NCBI GenBank assembly: GCA_000320545.1
Contig: ADNK01000771.1
Location: forward strand, 1-41,657
Direction of reading: 5' to 3'
DNA: 41,657 nt
Source of the DNA: Bigelowiella natans CCMP2755
Lineage: Eukaryota > Protista > Cercozoa
In this document: one piece after another, positions 1-40,532 of the stretch
Numbering within the stretch: position 1 is the first letter of the stretch
Layout of the letters: each line of letters begins with the position of its first letter
The notes under the pieces: generated by a model
What the model saw: the letters and a program-made list of their open reading frames with translations, nothing else
Told to the model about the DNA's origin: nothing
The model's database searches: none
Position numbers and translations under genes: made by a program

Positions 1-1092
1 AATGCTTTTTCTACCATTGTGATTCTTCTCCCTTTCTCCTACATAGTGTTAAAATATGAATAACATAATTCGCTGCATAGGCTAAGGAAGAGCAAAGGTT
101 GTTGAAAGAAGAAAAGAGACACGCAAAGGTAGTAGTACAAAACAATTAAACGAATAAATAATGCTACTTTCAAACGCTTACCAAGAAGATATATTGCCCC
201 GATCCATCATCGCCAAGGAACCAAATTATCATATTAAGAGGCTGTAGTTGAGAGGGGTGGCGAGAAGATGTCGAAATTTCCTCTCAAAATCCATCAGCAA
301 ATATAGCTACTTTTCTCTCCTCCGTGATCTTCACCATATCTTGTTACAGGAAGAGAGAAATACACTGACAAGAACGTATAATATTCGGCCACTTTCCGTG
401 GACGAGGTGGTGTTTGTAGCAATACGATGGTAACGATAACGATGTTGATAAACTACTCAATACTATTGCGCCAGGTTATCAACGCAAAGGCTTCCCAACA
501 AGCCAATATGTACGCGGTAATAGCAAACGACGTCTTATAGTGTAGGAAGATGGAGATTGAAAGAAAATATATCCTATCATTCATGCCCTCGCACACGCAA
601 AGATAGAGGGTGGGTGGGGTCGGGGGGGAGTGCGATGAAGGAGGCATGGTGTTGGGAGAGAATACAGAACCTCTAGAATTAATTGTCTGATCAATTTTTA
701 CCGTGAGGATCCTCAAAATCTTCGTTAATTAAAAGTAAAAATGATCCGTGTCGCCCATCATTACTTGATTCATCTTCTTCATTAGATGCAACTCCAGAAA
801 CAATACCAACAACAGGTGATAACGCTGCTGTTGGTAGTACAAAGGCACCTCTCCCTATTTTACGAAAAATACGATGAGCCACACTCATTTTTTTTTAAGA
901 AACAGCTATGAGGAAATAGCAATTTAATCTAGCGATGCGATCAGGATGGACGAAAATCATATGGGCATTCGCTAATATCGATATACGATCTCGCACTAAT
1001 TTGAATACTTTTGTACCTATCACACTCGTAAACACTACCGATAGCGGACCTTTGAAGTCAGAATTAGCCGACAACAAGTGACATGATCTCAT
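1..1092 (-). CDS. Hypothetical multi-exon protein, runs off the left edge (5' end uncertain)
   Basis: Phase-compatible GT-AG exons on the minus strand, e.g. 241-182 (PLNMIIWFLGDDGSGQYIFL, donor gtaagc) joined to 38-1 (EKGRRITMVEKA). Further plausible exons lie at about 540-463, 888-705 and 1092-895. No family recognised. Confidence 0.4.
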
Positions 1093-1452
1093 CTATTCCA
1101 ACTTTTGTTTCCTTTAATTCAGATGGGTCAGGGACATCATTCAGCTGCCCATTCACCTCTTAGCGGGGGGAGAAGGAGCACAAGTCGCAGATATTGAACA
1201 AAAAAATGAAACGTGATGGCTTATCTAGTATTGTTTTGATCATATGAGAAGGTACGCCAACACATTGTGCATATGCGTTTAATATGTGCGCTACATACAA
1301 TACCTGACAGCCAAATCATCGCATGGCAACATGCGAGCTATCTAGCTGTATGCAATATTCACGTGCATGCGCTCTACCGGGCCTCTGCAGCACTTGACGC
1401 CTATCATCCAGTGTAGGATCAAATGATTGCTCGCTTCGCATACAGCTATAGC

Positions 1453-1455
<3 letters not shown>

Positions 1456-1487
<32 letters not shown>
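1456..1487. repeat. (TA)14-TG-TA microsatellite abutting a repeat-family end
   Basis: Read directly; it is immediately followed by AGACGGATG at 1488. Confidence 0.9.
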
Positions 1488-1897
1488 AGACGGATGTAAT
1501 TAATCAATTAAATTTGCTCAATAGTTATCCTTATGTAGCTGTGCAATGCAGCGGCTAATATACATATACGATGTACACATATATTTTCGGCGACTGTTTT
1601 GGTGTATCGATCCGAATGCAGCAGCTGGCCTGTGCTATATGCATGGCAAAATGGCGTGGCACACGCATCGTAGCAACGCCCACAAAGAGCACTGGCCTAA
1701 GTAGCATATGCTGCACGAAAGGCCCTGGCCTGTATGTATGTGACCGTATTTTGTTCACACGCGCATGCCGCAGCTAGGCTAAGGCATGCACATATCTACA
1801 TATATGCAAACGCAACTTTGGCGCTGTAACCGCAGCTTTGCAGAGCTACAATAGGATGACGATTTCACGAATTTAACTTATTCATCACATCCGTCTC
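1488..1897. mobile_element. Degenerate element with two outward-facing copies of the GAGACGGATG-terminated repeat family (1488-1558 and about 1805-1897)
   Basis: 1488-1558 and the reverse complement of 1805-1897 both align by eye to 5776-5860 (GAGACGGATGTRATGAA...TCATCCYAATGTAGCTGTGCAA...GCGGCTACAGCGC). Confidence 0.7.
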
Positions 1898-2035
1898 ATA
1901 TGAATATTACATGCATGCAGGCACATACGCACGGTACAGATGTCTGCTGCAAATACCATGATATTTTAAAAAAAAATCTCATTTAGATTCCAGCTGCACG
2001 GTATTCCATCCACAATAAAACGCATATCGACACTC

Positions 2036-3020
2036 TTAAAATTTCGGTCCTCTGCTCCTTCCCGTATACTTGGAATTGTGTTTCGTCTGAGGCGAACAAG
2101 TGAACATTGTTACGAAGATGGCCACAATCTGTTTCACAATGCCAAACAGTTACCTTCTTCCCTGCAAGTCTAGCACTTTCTTTTTTCTTCTGGATCCACT
2201 GCCTTGACTTTACCTTCAAAATTTAGTCGTGGTAGCAGTAGTAGTAGTAGCAGTAGTAGTAGTAGTAGGTAGTGTGATGAGGAGGAGAAAGGAGGAGTAA
2301 ATCGATGGAGTGTCATTTAAATTATCATGATTAAAGGTGCAACCGGTACTCGCATCCCTTTGCCATTTCTCCTTCGTCTGCCAGTGCTGGAAAAAAAAGC
2401 AGAATTTAATTTCCGTGGCCTTCCCTCCTTCATCAAGTATGGTTTTGTCTTGCTGACCTCTTGCTACTAGTAAATAAGACCGTGTCTCCTCCCCCTCCGA
2501 CTTCTTTTCCTTCCTCTTGCATTCCTACGATGATGATTTTCCAGCATCGTAACAATGTGTGAATATAATCAAGGGAAGAAGAAAGCCATTAGGCAAGGAC
2601 TAAGAGTAGCACCTTTCGGAATCTGGACCCTTGTGTTGGGTTCCCCAGCGACAAGACATAAAAAATACCTAAAAATCTCATCGTTGACTACTCACATCAT
2701 CATTTTGAGCATGAGGGTTAAGTCGAGTTACTTCTTAGCCTTGGTGGAATTCGGATAATCAACCACAAGCCCACCCGAAAATCCAGCAGCCTGGGCCTAC
2801 AAAATGGTAGCCATCATAGACCATCCATTAGAAACTGAAACAGCCTCCTCAGAGTGTTTGCTAGTCAATTACCGCATTTGTTATCATTGTAACTTGCTGA
2901 GCATGTTCAGGATAAAATTGCATCACAGCTCGTGCTCCCTTCGTCAAACACCGGTATAAGGAGGTGAAGAATGCCTTTGATAAATAGATGTTAAGATTCT
3001 CTCCAATTTGCAGTTTCGTG

Positions 3021-3103
<83 letters not shown>

Positions 3104-3977
3104 CTGTTATTTTGTTCAAACCTTCAGTCTTTTTTTCGGCACATGATGGCTTTTGTCTGCCTGGCAAAGCCACTGAATCACACTTATGCTAAAAAAATTA
3201 TTTAATAAGATACAGCATCAGGTACAGAATCGATTTTGAACAAAACATCTGGAAACTGTATTATGTAACCTTATGCACGCATCGAAGGACCCGGGACGAA
3301 ACATCAGGCCATCTCCCTACCGAAGACAGGGATTTACGGTGTGGATTACTTTTCAAGCTGGAAGAAATCTTACAGCGTCTGCGTAGATAAGATCCCCCAT
3401 AACTTCTCTCTCTATGGCAACGCCTGTTATATATATGTGGTTTCATTTCATTCTTGTCTTGTAAAATGCTACCTATACCGTTGTAGTTACCTAACATGGC
3501 CTTGCTGATATCCAAACCTACCCAAACGTGCTCGTTCTCAGTCAAAACCTCTCCACTGAGCCCAGACCTTTTCCGGATTATTTATCGGTCAAACAAGAAC
3601 AATCGCCAATATGATCGTCGTGGTCACTACCCGCATCCGATGTCTAGAATGTGGCAGGGATGGTCCGGAAGATTCAAAAGCTCCATTGCTCTGATCGTTG
3701 GAAAAATTCATCACGACTTCACAAGATTGTTCGCTGTGCCATCTCACCTTTCCGACATTTTGCTTTGAATTTCCATCATCCGAGTACTATTTGTAGCGAT
3801 AACCACTCAGACCGGGCTTGTAAGGGGGGGGACGTGATTAGTAACCTGTAGGCGTACTTCTTCGCCTCCATTTCGTCATAGAACTATTAAGTTAAAAATT
3901 AGTACCAATATGAGATTTTGAATAGAATAATCGAATACGATGTCAGGGGGGTTTAGATGCTCGGGACGCCTGGACAT
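2036..3977 (-). CDS. BUD23: 18S rRNA (guanine-N7)-methyltransferase BUD23/WBSCR22, about 15-16 exons
   Basis: Spliced translation [13 protein letters not shown]|[13 protein letters not shown]|[13 protein letters not shown]|[20 protein letters not shown]|[25 protein letters not shown]...[19 protein letters not shown]...QFYPE...[23 protein letters not shown]...[11 protein letters not shown]...[15 protein letters not shown] at 3977, stop at 2036-2038. The exons at about 2340-2480 are uncertain. Confidence 0.95.
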
Positions 3978-4455: not shown

Positions 4456-5397
4456 ATGGGCTGCACTTATGGCAAGGAAGGGCCTCACTCTGTAAAATGT
4501 CTGAAGATGATGGACGGTGCTAGATTTGTGACCTTCAGTCCTGAAGGAACAATTATAGCAACAGGCCAACGAGCTGATGTTCAACTTATTCCATTTGGTC
4601 GAGATTCCAAGTTGAAACGGTCGGAAAGTTTATCTGGGCATAAAAAGATTGTAACTTGCGCAGATTTTCACCCTATGAAGAGTTACGAACTTGCAAGTGG
4701 ATCTGGGGATAATTGCATAATTATTTGGGATGTGTCCAATGGACAACCTAAAAGAAAGATGATTGGACATGGACAATGGGTTTCCGCTGTAAAGTATTCG
4801 CATGAAGGGGATCGGCTGGCCTCTGCTTCGTGGGATAACTTTTGTCGGGTTTGGAACGTGGTTGACGGAACTTGCATGTTCGCGCTTTCGGGTCACACTG
4901 ATCATGTCCGTTCCATCGCGTTTTCTCCAGACAGTTCCTATCTTTTAACTGGCGCTGAGGATAGCAAATGCATTCTTTGGTCTTCGAAGGATGGAAAACT
5001 GAAGAGGACTTTTAAGCAACAACACAGTTCAGATGTGCTATGCTGCTGTTTTTCACCTTTGGGCAAGATTGCGGCCAGTTCCTCACAGGATAATACCATA
5101 CGTATTTGGAGCGTTGAGACAGGAAAATGCACGAAGACCTTACGTGGACACTCGAGCATGGTCAGAAACATCGCATTCTCCCCTGATGGACTTTCTCTGG
5201 CTTCCGCCAGTGATGATTACACAATCCGCGTTTGGAATACTAAAGATTGGACTCAACCATCGATAATAATCCGAACAAGTACCGTCAATGAGTACGTTAA
5301 GTATTCACCGGACGGAAAAACACTAGCATCTATTTCTGGAACTGACCAAGTTCGTTTATGGACCGCTCCGAAACCAATTGATTACTCAACCGTTTGA
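4456..5397 (+). CDS. WD40-repeat beta-propeller protein, single exon, 313 aa
   Basis: About 7 canonical GH...WD-type repeats (e.g. LSGHKKIVTCADFHP...LASGSGDNCIIIWD; LRGHSSMVRNIAFSPDGLSLASASDDYTIRVWN). The N-terminus is MGCTYGK. Confidence 0.92.
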   Translation: MGCTYGKEGPHSVKCLKMMDGARFVTFSPEGTIIATGQRADVQLIPFGRDSKLKRSESLSGHKKIVTCADFHPMKSYELASGSGDNCIIIWDVSNGQPKRKMIGHGQWVSAVKYSHEGDRLASASWDNFCRVWNVVDGTCMFALSGHTDHVRSIAFSPDSSYLLTGAEDSKCILWSSKDGKLKRTFKQQHSSDVLCCCFSPLGKIAASSSQDNTIRIWSVETGKCTKTLRGHSSMVRNIAFSPDGLSLASASDDYTIRVWNTKDWTQPSIIIRTSTVNEYVKYSPDGKTLASISGTDQVRLWTAPKPIDYSTV

Positions 5398-5775
5398 ATG
5401 TCTTCTTAAAGTTCCAACACCATAATCATTTGAAGATCGAATCTTTTTCGAGAAGTTATCGTACGGGAATGCGGTGTTGTTTGTGGGTATGTATGACTCA
5501 CATGCGCGTGGTAGTGATGAGGGTACATTAGAGTACTAAGTTTCTATTCTACAATACGCCATGCAAGCGAATTAACTATATCGTTACACACATTCATGTG
5601 GTACGTACACGCAGCCGTATACATGCGTCTACCGCAGCATGTGCATTGGCAGCAGTAGGCTTTTGCTAATTTATTCGTACATTAGTAGGCACGGGTGATG
5701 TACATTTCTTTTCTTGACATTTAGATTTTTATTGTAGACATAGCAATGCACACACACACACACATGTATGTGTAG

Positions 5776-6890
5776 GAGACGGATGTGATGAAATGTTCAA
5801 ATTTTTTCAATGGTCATCCCAATGTAGCTGTGCAATGCAGCGGCTACAGCGCTTAAATTGTGTCTGTTTGTTTCCTTGGTCACGTGTTGCATGCATGAAA
5901 ATGCATCGTGATTTGGTCTAGCATGTCGCGCATTGCGCGCAGCTTTGCGACTTGTTTTTTCTGCAGTTGTGAGATGCGCAGTCTCATCGTTGCGATCCAT
6001 GCTCAGAGTGTCCTTGCACCGCCGACTCAGTTTGATCACGACCAAATTGCTTGGAGCGGAACACCCTGCAACACGTGCTGCAAGCAATGTTGGAAGAATA
6101 GGCGCGGGTGGCACAGTGGCGGCAGGCACAAGCAGCGATGTGCTGCGACTTGCGTGTCGCAGGCACAGAACTCGCCTGCACTTGCAGCCTCTTGCTGCGT
6201 GCTCATCGCAGCCTGCAAACGCCCGCAGATCTCTCTGCCGTTGCAGCTGGCTGCTCAAGCAAGCACTTCGCGCGCTGAGTGCAAAGCACTCCAACAAGCA
6301 AGACACCAAAAAATGAATTGAACGCACACAACAATGAAACGATCATGCGGATCGCTGCATCCAACTTCAAAACAAACTGGTGCCAAGAGGGAACAAAGGC
6401 CATGCATTTGAAGAAACTTGGTTTCATGCCTGGCTCTCGCACAACAGGAATCACATTGAAGCTGCCAAGCATTGCCACATCATGGATGCGCGCCATCTGT
6501 GGTGTTGGCAACCTTGGAACTTTTTTGCTGTCCAGAGGACAACGCACAAAATTGGAAGCAATGTGCGACACATGCAACACATGCCAAGACATTGTGGACC
6601 ACATTCTGCAATGCAGAAAATGCGGACCACAGAGACTCAGAATCAACAAACAACTGACGGCCATCGTGGATCGCGACGATGAGACTGCGCGTCTCACAAC
6701 CGCAGAAAAAGCAACTCGCAAAGCTGCGCGCAAAGCACGACATGCTGGACCAAATCATGATGCATTTTCATGCATGCAACACGTGACCAAGGAAACAAAC
6801 AGACACAATTTGAGCGCTGTGGCCGCTGCATTGCACAGCTGCATTGGGATGACCATTGAAAAAATTTGAACATTTCATTGCATCCGTCTC
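5776..6890. mobile_element. Transposon relic with about 225-bp inverted arms (5776-6000 / 6666-6890), containing the 3' end of a non-LTR (LINE-like) ORF; almost no TpA
   Basis: The arms align without gaps, with 15 mismatches in 225 bp (hand count). Both ends read GAGACGGATG inward. The internal plus-strand frame carries a CCHC knuckle. Confidence 0.8.
6279..6869 (+). pseudogene. C-terminal fragment of a non-LTR retrotransposon ORF2 (CCHC zinc-knuckle region), hypermutated
   Basis: WMRAICGVGNLGTFLLSRGQRTKLEAMCDTCNTCQDIVDHILQCRKCGPQR resembles the LINE post-RT motif (RLRTGHxxLxxYLxRIG...CxxC-x7-8-HxxxxCxxY). There is no Tyr in 196 aa. Confidence 0.55.
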
Positions 6891-7361
6891 ATGCATGTGT
6901 GACGTGTGCCAACATCACATTGTCCATCATTTTCATGACTCGACCACGTCACATGGCAGCCGGCGCCAATGTGCGCTCACATGGTTGCGATGCTGATTGA
7001 CAATGAACATGCGGCGGCCGCCAGCATGTAGCTGCGGTGTCGTGCCACGATGCACTGGTTGATTGCCATCCAAAAGGACTCATGCATGTGCCGCATTGCA
7101 GAAAACATGTTCATGCAACCATGTCATGTGACCATGTTCACTCGAAGAAAGAAGCAAGCAAAACATGTGTCGTTTTCTGAGTCGTTGCTTACAATTTTGA
7201 AATTTGCAACAGCCATGCATGCAAGTCGTGCTAGTATGCGTACAACATGTTTACGTTATTGGGATGCGATGTAAATGAAAACGAAGCAAATATTTAGGCC
7301 ATATAGCACAGTTATGATGCAAGAGGCCTTGCAGGAACTATATTTATTACCCTCTTCATAT

Positions 7362-8267
7362 CTAGACTATAAACTCGCAAGCAAGAAACATGTGATCGGA
7401 AGGATAAAATTTACCATCAAATTTTGCATACTCCTCAGGGTTCACTAATTCCTTTGGAATGCTCCATGATTCAGTTCCCCATATGTGCGCATTGTCCGGT
7501 TGTAGGCTAAATTATAAGTATACAGAGTGCATGCAGTAAGAGGGTATGCAGCAGCAGCAGCAGCGTCTACACAGTCAGTTGGGCTTATTGTGAGGTCATT
7601 ACCCCTGTGAAAAAATGTAGTCTATTCGTGACTTTGGTGTCCAAGAGCTGAAAGTCCATCCTACACGGAAACCAGCAAGCTTAAGATAACGAGTTTGATT
7701 ATTCTGGATTGTAAACGACATATATGTGTGCATATTGCTTTGTGACGCAGTGCCCAGCAATTACACACACACACACACACACAACACACATACACATACA
7801 CAGTAACACACATACGTGATAAGTTACTACCAGCTTCAGAGGGGTTCAAGGATCGCCAGCAATCCTTGGTTTCAACATCAGTCACATATAGTTTATAGCA
7901 ATAATTTCAATACAAATCAGACCATGTATAGGAAAACTTATAAGTGCATTCCGCGAATAACTTCCAGCGCCTCAACCGACGCGATCGATGGCTTGCTATG
8001 TTTTTGTGTGAGTTATATAAAACGCCCCCCCCCCCCAAGGGAGCGGGGCCATCTTCACGAAGATGACGGTTCGGAGCACTGTCGCTGAGTGATTGATGAT
8101 TCACACCTTGAAGCCATGGCGTTGAATGAACAACGGGTCTTCCTGCTCTAAGACTGCATTAAAATCTCCAACCAATACCTGCAATCAGTCATTATCTCTT
8201 CCCAATCAGGCATCTGAAAGAGGTCAATCGTATTGCGACAGACACCCCTCTACCTACTCACCCATCC

Positions 8268-15439: not shown

Positions 15440-15664
15440 CACAATGGGAGAACATTTTTTCAATTGTCATCCTAATGTAGCTGTGCACAGAGGCGGCAAC
15501 AGCGCTAAGATTGTGTTTGTTTGTTTCAGCAATTACGTGCTTTATGTTTGCAAATTCTACATAATGTGTGACACAGATGTAATGAATATATTAGATTTCT
15601 TCAATTGTCATCCTAATGCAGCTATACAAAGCTGCGGCTACAGCGAACTGCATTGGTTTGTTTC
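15440..15664 (-). mobile_element. Two tandem degenerate copies of the same repeat-family end (about 15440-15528 and about 15574-15664)
   Basis: Both contain TTCAATTGTCATCCTAATG(T/C)AGCT...GCGGC(A/T)ACAGCG, matching 5800-5850. Minus-strand translations are SAVAASVHSYIRMTIEK and AVAAALYSCIRMTIEEI*. Confidence 0.75.
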
Positions 15665-16226
15665 CGTGTGCCATTGATGTACGTCATGTCGTCTGTGCAC
15701 GACATGCGGTAGTCGAAACAAGAAGACGACCAAACGACAGACGATGCAACGTGCTGAGCGCAACAACAATGAAAACTATAAAACGCAACGGCAGCAGCTC
15801 ACAGCGCTGCAACGAGCGAGTACATGATGCTGTGGTTGTACGTTGTACGTATACGTTTGGTTCAGCCGATCAAATAATTTCAATGAAAACCGGCAATGGG
15901 ACAAAATCAGTGCAACTGGCTAGCAGTAGGGACATGCCTAGCTAGGCCGCTCAGAGCTAGTGAACGCTTGTGAACTCATGCTAGTATGCAAACATCTCTA
16001 GCCACTTGATGTGCACATACTGCAAGTCACTATGCACGTGCCGGCGGGTGCGCACACATGCGCCGAGCTAGCGAGATCAAACTGCTTAATTTGCATGCAT
16101 GGACGCGATGCAAAAACGACAGATGCAATGAAATATCTTACGTTGGCATCAACAAAAAGCCAAGATACATGCTCGTAATGTACATGATGTGAAATGTTAA
16201 CAATCTCAATTACTGGCCTCTTTGTC

Positions 16227-20644: not shown

Positions 20645-21720
20645 GTCACTTGCATTGCAACATGTCCAGTGCATCAGAAGAAAATGCTAACGCATGCATT
20701 CGCTTTCCTGCAGTTACCAGCACGCTAGCACGTGTTCTGCAATGATTGCATGCAGCATGCATGTTTGCACATTTGAATGCGCATGCATGAATGAATGAAT
20801 GAACGAAGTGATTCCAATGTACCAATGCGGAGCTAAAATGAGAGCCATGCATGCCCATGGATGGGATCACAATGGCTTGTGATGGGATTGTCATGCAATC
20901 TCATCCACGCCCTCCTTTGTGTGCTCCTCAATCAACAAAGTCCACCATGGAAACAATGGAAAGATCGATGATGGTTTGTTTCACATTCGCCGACCATGGC
21001 ACACTCAAACAATGACATCAGACCGATGACCTGCAGGGAAATGAGCCCGCGCTAGCACGCGAGGACAAACAACTGGCGTTGAAAGGATCTTGTTCATGCG
21101 CAGCCGTTTGATGAGGAGGAGGAAGAACAAGAAGTGTCTCGTGAATGAACGAACAAGTGAACAAGTGAACGGATGAAGTGGTTCCGCAACTGGGGATCTG
21201 AAAGGATCATCGGAGTGGTGCTGACACATCCACACCCCAAACAAACAGCTTGCTAGCTTGCCAGAAGGAAAATTACAAAATTGAAAGAAAGAAAGGAACA
21301 AAGAAACTTTGTTGATTGACTGCTGATGCTGTGGAATGCTGCTGCTAGAATGCCAGAATGCATGCATGAGTCGTCGTGCTGCACAGCTAGCGCATATTGG
21401 TCACAGCTTGTAGACGACATGCGATGCATGAGACATGTGAGCTAGCTAGCATGCTAGCATGTACTTGCGTACAACGACAAGCTACATGGATCCATCGATC
21501 GATGCATGCAACGCATGCGCAAAAAATGCAAAAAATGAAAAATGTGCAGGTGCGTCAAGGCACACTAGCTAGCACATAGCAGTCGTGTGTGCGCACATCT
21601 GACATGTCTAGATGTGTCGGAGTGTCAATCAGGAATCACACCAGGCGAAACTAGATCCTTTGTGTGTGTGCATTGTTTTTCATCACTGTTACACGGATAG
21701 CTGGCTAGATAGAACAAGCT
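20645..21720. repeat. TpA-depleted, CA/TG-rich intergenic island (probable decayed repeat/TE)
   Basis: 12 TA in 20645-21420 and only one in 20836-21253. No coding homology recognised. Confidence 0.55.
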
Positions 21721-24416: not shown

Positions 24417-26178
24417 ATGGGAGAAGAAAAAAAGTCATCGAAGAATATCGGATTCGGAAAGCTCATCCTATTTGGAGAGCACTTCGTTGTTTACAAGGTG
24501 CGCAAATCAGAGGTATACCTCTGCATACTCGCTAACACATTCGTCACTACAGGTGCCTGCTCTGGTTGCAGCCGTCAAGGCAGCCACTGAATGCAAAGTG
24601 GAGGTGAGGAATGTTAGTTGCAGCTTCAAGTGTCGGTGTACTAATAGATTTTACATTTTTTATATTTCTGTTTCCAGCTATCTTCTAAGACAACCGAATC
24701 TGAAGATGGGGCCTGGTCAAGTGGGCTACTGGTAATCCATTTACGATAATATTAATTTTATTCGGATGATATCTTCCACGCCAGCTGCTGTATCTCCATC
24801 GAGGAGGATAAAAGAAGGGGTGTGTGTGTGTGTGCTAGGTGGCGTGGCTACGATATTACCTCAAGTATTTTCTTCATATTCTAGATTGAGGACAATCGCC
24901 CAGCAGTCCCCGGATACAAGCGCAAGAAACGTGATGAAATGATTGAGGTTCTTGTCTCCGATAACAACCTTGTTGGTGTCAAACTTCTATCTCTTTGGAA
25001 TGAGAAAAAAGGAAACCTTTCGGCATATCTAATTTATTCTCTCTCCCTCGCTCTCTCTCTCTCAGGCAACCAAACTGGTTCTTAAGCACTTCAAGGTTGA
25101 CCACGAGAAGCGAGGAGTGAAGGTGTGCTTCCCTGCCGTACCTCTAATTAAATACTTATCGCTTTGCAAAGCGCTTGAGAAACCCAAATCCAAGAATAAA
25201 TCATTTCCAAATTGACATGGAATCATCACGTGAACCAGATCACCTTGGGCGGAGATTTGTGCGCGGTATCTGGAATTGGAGCGTCTGCGAGCAATGCTGT
25301 GTCGTTGTCTCGTGCCCTGGCTGATGCGCTTGGTTGCACCACACACACAAACACACGCACAAACATACACACACATAACCTGGCATACATATGTACTATG
25401 TGTGCTTGAGGAAACAATTCTATTAAAGACTTTCGTGCATTTGATACCAAGTTCATGCGATGTTCCTATTTTCATATTCCATTCAATATTTTGGCGATGA
25501 CAGGCATGGAGCTGACAGAGGAAGAAATCAATCGTGCAGGCTATGAGGGCGAGAAGGTATTAGTAATAGTAGTACATCTTCTAGTTCTACTGGGATGGGA
25601 ACGTGACAACTTCATGTGACATGTAGCAGCATGATTGCTAAAGTGTGTTTCGTCTACTCGTTTTTGTTTGCTGAGTAGGGCTACCACGGCACTCCTTCCG
25701 GCATCGACAACACCGCTGCCACATATGGAGGGGTTCTTAGCTTCTGTCGCACGGTCCGTTACCCTGATACGTGTAAGAAATAGGGGGAGGGAGTCAGTGT
25801 CAAAGGCATAGTCTGGCCACTCAATTCTCTAACTATTAAAAGAAGAATGTTTTTTCTCATCCATTCTGTAATCATCGTCTCCTGAGCGTGGTACCGACCC
25901 TTCCTGCTTCTCGTAAATGCTACCATTGTCATACTTTCCACCTGACGAAGTCTTTTTTGTTCTCTTTATTCAATATTTGCAATGTGCTTCCATTCGGCCG
26001 TAAATCAGGACGGAGATCCTAAATTCGAAATCAAAAAGTCAGTAATAATACACATGCGGAATATTCATGATTTATATGCATGTTTGTCATCGTCGTACGT
26101 GCCAGCTGGTTGCTTTGACTTATGTTTCTTCCGGTTCGCTGTATTTTTCTCTATTTCTTCGGTGCTTTGTTGCATATA

Positions 26179-26215
<37 letters not shown>

Positions 26216-33302: not shown

Positions 33303-33429
33303 AGACGGCGCAGCTTGCTGTCTGGCTAATTACTGTGTCTATTTTGCTACGCTTGTTCGAGTTGTGAGCACATCACTGCAACAAGGCGATGATGACGGCA
33401 TTGACACACTGCGTGCACAGCAATGGTAA

Positions 33430-33881
33430 CTCAATGCAATTTTGCGTCTTGAAGATTGTCATGAATCAAGCTAGCAAGTGCCACCATGAGCATGTCCGCA
33501 AGGGGAGATGCGCATGACAATTGCAAGCAAGAACAGAGTGCATGTCACACATGTAGTGCATGTGTTGTTCACTGTGAACCGGAGACTAGAAAAAAGTGTT
33601 TCTGTGTCAGGTAGAGTTACAGAATGCAGTTCTTTGAACACAACTGCTTCTAGAGCTCAGTCAAGCATCCATGTTGCACCTAGGCATGTGAATTCTTTGC
33701 ATCCAGCTTCGTGTTTCTCATCTTCGATGTCCATTTTTCTCCAGAATTCTTGCCACCTTTGAAGATCCAAACTTGGTGCCAAATGAGCCCACCCTCTGGT
33801 TTGTACTCTTTGGAGAGCCACATTCTTGGGATGTGAAATGAAGCATCTAGACCCGCATGTCGCAAGGACGATGATCATGTA
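33430..33881. repeat. TpA-depleted island containing a Tyr-free degenerate coding-like fragment (33657-33878, minus)
   Basis: 10 TA in about 450 bp, 8 of them in TAG. Confidence 0.55.
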
Positions 33882-34029
33882 GGTCGTTGCGGAAACAGGT
33901 GCCGATTTTTAAAAATATGACAGCTTATTTCTTGTCGTTCTTGAAACATAGCAAGACTTTTCTCTTCTAGCCGTTTGCTACATGATCATCGTCTTAGATC
34001 TAGATCTATGTACTTTGGATTGGAAAATT

Positions 34030-39925: not shown

Positions 39926-40223
39926 TCTCCCTCCTCTTTCTCTCTCTCGCACACACGGATATTGATTATCTGTGTGTGTAGGCGTGCATGCTTACCATGA
40001 ATCTGCGATCACGGCTAAATGCTTGCTACTGTGCTAAGGAGGCTTCTAGCACCGCGGCAGTACTCAAACGGCAAATGACGACGACAACAACATACTACTA
40101 CTGGTACTGCATGAACCTTTCTCCGGAAGGATCAACCCAGGGAGAGATCAGGATCAACCCATCTGCAGATCTTAAGCTTTCTTCTTGCGCACGGAGTAGA
40201 ACTGCAACCGACAGCCCTCCTGC

Positions 40224-40255
<32 letters not shown>

Positions 40256-40532
40256 GTACACTTGTGTGTGTGTGTGTGTTTGTGCGCTTAGAACACGACA
40301 GGTAGTAGTAGTAGCAGTTTGAGAAGAAGAATAAGTTCAATGTTACGTTACTCCTACTACTACTCCTCCTCCATCATATTTCCTACTGCTACCACTGCCG
40401 CTCCTACTACTACCCCCGGCTGAGTCTCCTGCAAGGACGATGCTACGTGAGCAGTGAAACAACGCCCATTTGTAGACTTCCAGAGCCTTTAGTTTCGCAT
40501 TACCGAATAATCGAAGACCAGCCACAACACCA

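Follow-up and report, generated by a model that had tools for sequence, protein, structure and literature searches.

A TG/CA/TA mosaic tract beside a LINE fragment in Bigelowiella natans, best read as a minor footprint of TpA hypermutation

The in-phase dinucleotide mosaic at positions 5747-5774 of a 41,657-nt stretch of Bigelowiella natans CCMP2755 DNA (contig ADNK01000771.1, hereafter the window) is best read as a minor footprint, and a small corollary, of the TpA hypermutation already published for this organism. It lies against a copy of a LINE family with 3' ends at TA/YR steps, which we identify as one target of the process. Evidence from sequence only suggests that conversion went on after integration of this copy, on one genomic strand over its inverted arms. 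For the mosaic itself, we give even weight for and against a history in which the element landed in a compound (CA)n(TA)m target, the TA part of which was later partly converted. TpA-specific hypermutation itself was already described; the locus at 5747-5774 adds modestly to it.

Tracts at the ends of a LINE family

Direct reading confirmed the composition and position of the three tracts that an earlier note on this DNA had placed at the ends of the GAGACGGATG family. Positions 1456-1483 are (TA)14, followed by TG, TA and then AGACGGATG; positions 5747-5774 run into GGAGACGGATG; and positions 6892-6901 stand immediately 3' of CATCCGTCTCA. The units of all three tracts share one phase, each tract touches a family end, and the (TA)14 and (CA)8 cores were listed by TRF. 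The tracts and their parts were as follows (none has an assigned strand):

5747-5774: in-phase YR tract TG (CA)8 TG TA TG TG TA, a microsatellite next to the inverted LINE fragment, on its 3' side, where the TpA-poor island has its soft left edge
5749-5764: (CA)8 block, more probably CA from the outset or grown by slippage than the product of eight independent conversions
5765-5774: junction-proximal TG TA TG TG TA, candidate partly converted TA units, the three converted units all + strand A→G like the arms
6892-6901: right tail TG CA TG TG TG, with TG as the junction unit where five other family ends have TA
1456-1487: (TA)14 TG TA, in TpA-normal DNA, next to copy 1 on the 3' side of its inverted arm

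None of 1000 dinucleotide-preserving shuffles of the island produced 14 or more in-phase units of TA, TG or CA (the maximum was 9), so the tract at 5747-5774 is real repeat DNA and not chance composition. The window held 29 in-phase TA/TG/CA tracts of at least six units, together 1.5% of its bases, and three of the six family ends in the window abutted one of them, so the association of ends with tracts is not random. Microsatellite density was very high (116 TRF rows), and tracts mixing TG and CA in phase were found in TpA-normal DNA too (7719, 26171, 38639 and 40221, and 3157-3194 of L002). In the tract census, a long mosaic with TA in the minority was exclusive, within the window, to the tract at the edge of the island 5775-7230. 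The earlier note had called this tract the equivalent of the one at copy 1; the DNA outward of 1456-1487 and that outward of 5747-5774 are unrelated, so the equivalence stands by position and falls by descent.

The family is a non-LTR (LINE) retrotransposon with an APE endonuclease and a reverse transcriptase; in sense orientation its 3' end reads ...CATCCGTCTCA, of which GAGACGGATG is the reverse complement. The motif occurs in the window at 1487, 1888, 5776 and 6881, with a 23-nt core in common, and a scan of metagenome contigs with this core returned two contigs. In viral contigs, the core 21-mer gave no match and a 17-mer of the end motif gave 59 matches, none with the family, which we take as chance matches. 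In the metagenome copy L001, with its family end at 195, a 1158-aa ORF (216-3692, minus strand) runs up to that end and carries an endonuclease domain (Exo_endo_phos_2, aa 116-231, E = 1e-17) and a reverse transcriptase domain (RVT_1, aa 527-747, E = 2.4e-16), with a weak, distant relation of the RT region to R2 proteins in the PDB. An ORF2 with an APE-type endonuclease followed by RT and reaching the family end identifies the family as a non-LTR retrotransposon, and the stretch 6004-6891 of copy 2 aligned in sense orientation to the 3' region of L001. Ten family ends had in common ...CATCCGTCT(CA) while their 5' reach varied, as in 5'-truncated LINE copies with a shared 3' end. Directly after ...CCGTCTCA, five of these ends have TA, four have TG or CA and one has TC, so that nine of the ten have a YR unit. 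Long tracts were found at two of the ten ends only (c1L and c2L) and do not characterise the family; the earlier note's wording of tails or targets was apt, as the tracts adjoin retroelement 3' ends. Insertion flanks were YR repeats or too short to call target-site duplications.

The 190 nt that flank the LINE 3' end in L001 (1-190) are packed with CTAG/GCTAGC, with 13 CTAG in the first 500 nt, and look like a TpA-purged region in which surviving TAs are solely in CTAG context. TpA o/e along L001 was uneven, from 0.13-0.3 at 250-1000, near the 3' end of ORF2, to ~1.0 at 3000-3500, and the terminal 100 nt retains TAs.

Copies 1 and 2 in the window are 5'-truncated 3' fragments joined head-to-head, with 3' junctions or tails facing outward; a third locus was found by BLAST within the window. 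The elements, and the DNA beyond copy 2, were annotated as:

1488-1898, no strand assigned: copy 1, short, two LINE 3' ends joined head-to-head (arms of ~90 nt); TA-rich, TpA o/e 1.17
5775-6003, minus strand: left arm of copy 2, an inverted 5'-truncated LINE 3' fragment of ~229 nt, 93% identical to the right arm; 4/5 arm-stage TAs kept
6004-6891, plus strand: right part of copy 2, a 5'-truncated sense LINE 3' fragment of 888 nt, with the ORF2 C-terminal region and 3' end
6902-7230, no strand assigned: TpA-poor DNA beyond the element, TpA o/e 0.09, extending ~330-340 bp past it
15447-15668, minus strand: third locus, two 3'-end fragments in direct orientation (c3a 15447-15527, c3b 15569-15668), their ends without a long YR tract

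Within 6004-6891 a single TpA was found, at 6099 inside the extra segment 6079-6315, and none in the part alignable to L001. This segment of ~236 nt, without a counterpart in L001, lies between two well-aligned ORF2 C-terminal segments and was either gained by copy 2 or lost from L001.

The 229-nt inverted arms had initially been read as those of a TA-targeting TIR transposon or MITE, and this was dropped once the APE and RT ORF2 of L001 was found to run into the supposed TIR. A TIR DNA transposon or MITE of Tc1/mariner-Stowaway type that targets TA, with TA target microsatellites as its flanks, now seems to us a highly improbable identity for the family: the apparent terminal inverted repeats of 80-229 nt and the TA adjoining the ends are what such an element would have, but the repeat is the 3' end of an element bearing APE and RT ORF2, arm lengths are unequal in one copy (229 against 888 nt) and the ends at the third locus are in direct orientation. 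No transposase was found for the GAGACGGATG family, nor true TIRs bounding a transposase gene or a deletion derivative of one.

Waldo, Mino and Dong are examples of site-specific LINEs that integrate in simple repeats. Microsatellite-associated non-LTR retrotransposons (PMC4640811) resemble the present family in their APE and RT ORF2, 5' truncation and 3' junction in a simple repeat. Unlike them, only two of the ten ends of the present family are in long arrays, a TA/YR step being apparently preferred over a strict repeat, and its recurrent head-to-head 3'-end pairs are unusual. Such pairs were seen in three independent places (1488-1898 and 5775-6891 of the window, and 2131-2593 of L002), with interiors unrelated or different. 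As a speculation, each of the two nicked strands of a palindromic TA/(TA)n target might have served as primer on the 3' end of the LINE RNA, which would give such pairs.

A TpA-poor island and the published hypermutation

Mutation-accumulation lines of Bigelowiella natans acquired almost exclusively TpA→TpG/CpA changes, at ~1000x background, in an integrated giant virus and virophage (Mettrop et al., bioRxiv 10.64898/2026.01.13.699255). The same preprint reported 124 TpA-poor, CpA+TpG-rich clusters in the genome, an enrichment of RT and endonuclease-RT Pfams in TpA-poor CDS, and an ADAT2-like deaminase as the proposed agent (bioRxiv 10.64898/2026.01.13.699255). In the window, the island at 5775-7230 had o/e values of 0.07-0.08 for TpA, 1.74 for CA, 1.98 for TG and 0.85 for CpG, against 0.77, 1.20, 1.19 and 0.85 for the window as a whole, and about 90% of TpA in the copy 2 island is now TpG or CpA. 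The island is a footprint of the TpA-specific A:T→G:C hypermutation shown in Bigelowiella natans. Its dinucleotide values (TpA 0.08, CA 1.74, TG 1.98) lie within the cut-offs of the preprint for a hypermutation footprint, and the A→G/T→C transitions at TpA that belong to such a footprint were found at all nine L001 TA sites and in the six polarised arm changes described below. At ~1.4-1.5 kb the island does not reach the preprint's definition of a cluster, at least three consecutive 1-kb windows, which is a size rule of that scan and not of the process. TpA loss, CpA and TpG gain, a local rise in GC and A→G/T→C at TpA are common to both, as are poor activity on TAG/CTA, targets of retroelement type and a genome GC of 44.9% (44.85% in the window, 44.87% in the published nuclear genome; bioRxiv 10.64898/2026.01.13.699255). 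As differences, the preprint measured the integrated giant virus and virophage and scanned 1-kb windows and CDS; its text has no microsatellites (0 occurrences), LINE tails or strand patches.

The left edge of the island is soft, with surviving TAs at 5767, 5773, 5825, 5845 and 5854, and the TA-free core starts after 5919. Five of the seven surviving island TAs are in TAG/CTA context, which fits the few TAG hits in Table S2 of the preprint, where by our own count ~34 hits were in TAT, ~33 in ATA and three, in the NCLDV region, in TAG (bioRxiv 10.64898/2026.01.13.699255). The many TAT and ATA hits make a (TA)n array a good substrate. Beyond the element, 6902-7230 holds two TAs, and since this TpA-poor DNA is outside the element, the island is not coextensive with the LINE copy. 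BLAST against the window returned no relatives of the 6892-7240 flank or of the other islands. The stretch 6902-7230 could be an older hypermutated insertion that received copy 2. An uninterrupted 313-aa WD40-repeat ORF (4456-5397), with best database relatives at ≤45% identity, lies 350 bp upstream of the island. Three exact-protein look-ups gave no match, and a search for tRNAs was negative.

Two weaker TpA-poor islands were found in the window, at ~20721-21380 and ~33341-33900. In these and in 5775-7230, CATG was 1.4-1.9x over first-order expectation and CACA/TGTG was without excess; in background DNA, TATA was 1.35x over-represented and CATG stood at 0.98. Converted TATA is therefore expected as mixed mosaics and not as runs, and it is the loss of TA that directly makes the islands rich in CATG/TGCA. 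We rejected the islands as dsRNA-forming hairpins, as the other two are without long inverted repeats.

Direction and level of the changes

The direction of change is TA→TG/CA, as the earlier note had proposed. Outgroups keep TA where copy 2 has TG or CA: all nine L001 TA sites aligned to copy 2 were changed there, to CA at 6017 and 6037 and to TG at seven sites (6621-6879). Five more sites have TG in one of these two copies and CA in the other, a discordance that points to a TA ancestor. Of six ancestral-TA columns in the terminal 100 nt, the right arm of copy 2 (c2R) kept none and c2L two, while six of the seven other ends kept four or five and c3a two (gaps and other bases). The TA content of the tails (0/5, 2/14 and 15/16) parallels TA retention in their arms (0, 2 and 5 of 6). 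In these ends, TA-poor tails thus go with TA-poor arms, in line with the relation between tail composition and TpA depletion of the attached copy on which the earlier note had proposed a check.

The opposite polarity, by which a fungal-type RIP (CpA→TpA) turned a CA/TG-rich ancestor into the TA-rich copy 1 and its flank, is barely conceivable. Copy 1 is indeed TA-rich (o/e 1.17) and copy 2 TA-poor, and these two copies alone would fit either direction; yet TA is the majority state over 7-9 independent ends, the discordant TG/CA sites require a TA ancestor, a TpA o/e of 0.07 is far under any natural baseline, and de novo mutations, as measured, are AT→GC at TpA (bioRxiv 10.64898/2026.01.13.699255). 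What RIP has in common with the process seen here is that repeated or foreign DNA is hypermutated region by region, through transitions at a particular dinucleotide, and that islands of skewed dinucleotide content are left behind. It differs in that RIP creates TpA by C→T at CpA, whereas in the island TpA was destroyed by A→G/T→C. Fungal RIP, with its TpA excess in the mutated copy, was rejected on this opposite polarity, as given by the outgroups.

When the differences between the arms of copy 2 were polarised with L001, five TpA→TpG changes were assigned to the right arm and one to the left. Read on the + strand of the window, every one of the six is A→G, although the arms are inverted (binomial p = 0.03). 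One genomic strand was thus hit in both inverted arms, which places these changes in DNA after the arms had formed and excludes for them RNA editing before reverse transcription; one-strand conversion after integration in turn points to action at the DNA level with local strand patches. The claim of the earlier note for mutation of DNA and against RNA editing was therefore upheld, and mutation-accumulation data agree with it (bioRxiv 10.64898/2026.01.13.699255). Comparison of copy 2 with L001 revealed a CA patch followed by a TG patch, and the family mini-tract at 6569-6574 reads CA CA TG in copy 2 and TG TG TG in L001. In the right arm, three of eight A→G changes were at CpA or ApA instead of TpA. 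Mismatches between the arms (5775-6003 against 6662-6891) included 6/16 of the type CpG↔TpG/CpA, so ordinary CpG decay also supplies TG and CA.

An ADAR-like A-to-I editing of the LINE RNA, its tail included, before reverse transcription would have given TG units that were inherited at integration. TG exceeds CA in the sense orientation of both L001 and copy 2, and TA→TG fell on the sense strand at 7/7 sites in the 3' part of copy 2, as such editing would have it. We nevertheless find this very hard to credit, and for changes made after arm formation it is already contradicted: the inverted arm was altered on the same genomic strand, that is, on the opposite strand of the retroelement. TA→CA at 6017 and 6037, and the CA units in both tails, also speak against it, as do the extension of the island 340 bp beyond the element and the de novo changes gained by non-retro viral DNA in mutation-accumulation lines (bioRxiv 10.64898/2026.01.13.699255). 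Footprints of ADAR and APOBEC resemble the island in their clustered transitions in retroelement copies and in a preference for T, or U in RNA, as the base before the edited A; the island differs from them in that it was acquired after integration, on one genomic strand over inverted arms, and reaches into non-element DNA.

History of the tract at 5747-5774

With the element and one junction unit deleted, the pre-insertion tract was rebuilt as ~18 units, TG (CA)8 TG TA TG TG TA CA TG TG TG. The evidence on the history of the tails came from ten family ends. Target-primed reverse transcription would have started at TA steps or TA-containing microsatellites, and the likeliest landing site of the LINE here is a compound (CA)n(TA)m microsatellite. 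TA units by both junctions would then have been partly converted in place, mostly by + strand A→G as in the arms, to leave TG TA TG TG TA at the left junction and TG CA TG TG TG at the right one. The (CA)8 block would have been CA beforehand, or have grown by slippage.

Several observations bear on this sequence of events. At the right junction, beside an arm without any retained TA, the unit is TG, in a place where the family has TA more often than any other unit. Converted proximal units are seven TG to one CA, in agreement with the + strand bias of the arms, and TG outnumbers CA by 13:1 in the arms and proximal tails together, whereas the distal block has one TG to eight CA (Fisher p = 1.6e-4). 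Under independent 50:50 conversion, a run of at least eight like units has a probability of 0.012-0.043; an independent-unit null is unsafe ground for rejecting conversion of the (CA)8 block, and we down-weighted this argument because some short-range strand clustering exists. In the adjoining 150 nt of arm, 4/5 TAs were kept, whereas full conversion implies 12/14 lost in the tract (p = 0.017). Arrays that compound TA with a TG or CA block are common in TpA-normal DNA of the window (3026-3102, 7762-7802, 26171 and 40221-40278). The earlier reading of every unit as a former TA fits the junction-proximal units and the right tail, and the run probability, the TG:CA bias and the TA retention of the arm go against it for the (CA)8 block.

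That all 14 left and five right units go back to a pure (TA)n tail or target, every unit other than TA being a product of hypermutation and (CA)8 the result of one or a few short-range, single-strand clustered events, is unlikely, though a reading with real support. The reconstructed ~18 units match the usual size of (TA)n in the window (14-22 units), TAT and ATA are often hit and same-line pairs ≤10 bp apart share a strand (bioRxiv 10.64898/2026.01.13.699255), neighbouring units were converted alike in the mini-tract 6569-6574, and the long TA-minority mosaic is confined within the window to this island. Its difficulties are the run of CA units itself, which on top of its low probability is contrary to the local TG bias; the TAs retained in the neighbouring arm; the enrichment of islands in CATG and not CACA/TGTG; the plentiful pure (CA)n arrays in TpA-normal DNA; and the place of the tract at the soft edge of the island, whose TA-free core begins only past 5919. 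Still, (CA)8 could be the product of a single clustered event that struck TA units on the other strand. We consider it improbable, on the other hand, that hypermutation touched no unit and that an ordinary compound (CA)n(TG/TA)m microsatellite lies next to the element by chance: the richness of the genome in microsatellites, the in-phase TG/CA/TA mixtures in TpA-normal DNA and the soft-edge location with its surviving TAs (5767 to 5854) would allow it, but TG stands at the right junction, beside an arm that lost all its TAs, and five of the nine other ends have TA there, the TA content of tails tracks TA retention in arms, and half of the six window ends abut YR tracts that cover just 1.5% of the window.

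Same-strand clustering, as seen in the Table S2 pairs, at 6569-6574 and in the CA-then-TG patches of copy 2, is an observation against the compound target. In Table S2, three same-line mutation pairs were ≤10 bp apart, all of them on a single strand (bioRxiv 10.64898/2026.01.13.699255), and a runs test by hand on line 3 of that table was not significant (18 runs, ~22 expected, z ~ -1.2).

The locus, with a partly converted compound target as our preferred history, raises the corollary that (TA)n microsatellites in hypermutable DNA should decay to TG/CA mosaics, for which 5747-5774 alone gives mixed evidence; if it were true genome-wide, TG/CA mosaic tracts would be convenient dosimeters of hypermutation. 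The earlier note had gone further and suggested that some (CA)n/(TG)n and CATG/TGCA-rich tracts of this genome originated as (TA)n. The CATG/TGCA richness of islands does come from TA loss. The ~10 pure (CA)n/(TG)n arrays of the window, in contrast, were all in TpA-normal DNA (flank TpA o/e 0.56-1.39), and in the (TA)22/(TG)16 compound at 3026-3102 the two blocks are one base out of phase and the TA block is intact. A general (TA)n origin of (CA)n/(TG)n arrays is not shown and had no support from the window. That (TA)n arrays in hypermutable DNA are rewritten blockwise, by short-range (~10-16 nt), single-strand clustered TpA deamination, is a doubtful proposition. If true, (CA)n/(TG)n and CATG/TGCA-rich tracts would be born from a defence-like hypermutation, and the processivity and strand choice of the enzyme could be read directly from converted microsatellites.

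Two long (TA)n arrays in TpA-normal DNA (26171-26212 and 40221-40248) share an initial TG CA with the tract at 5747, which may reflect decay at the edges of TA arrays or coincidence.
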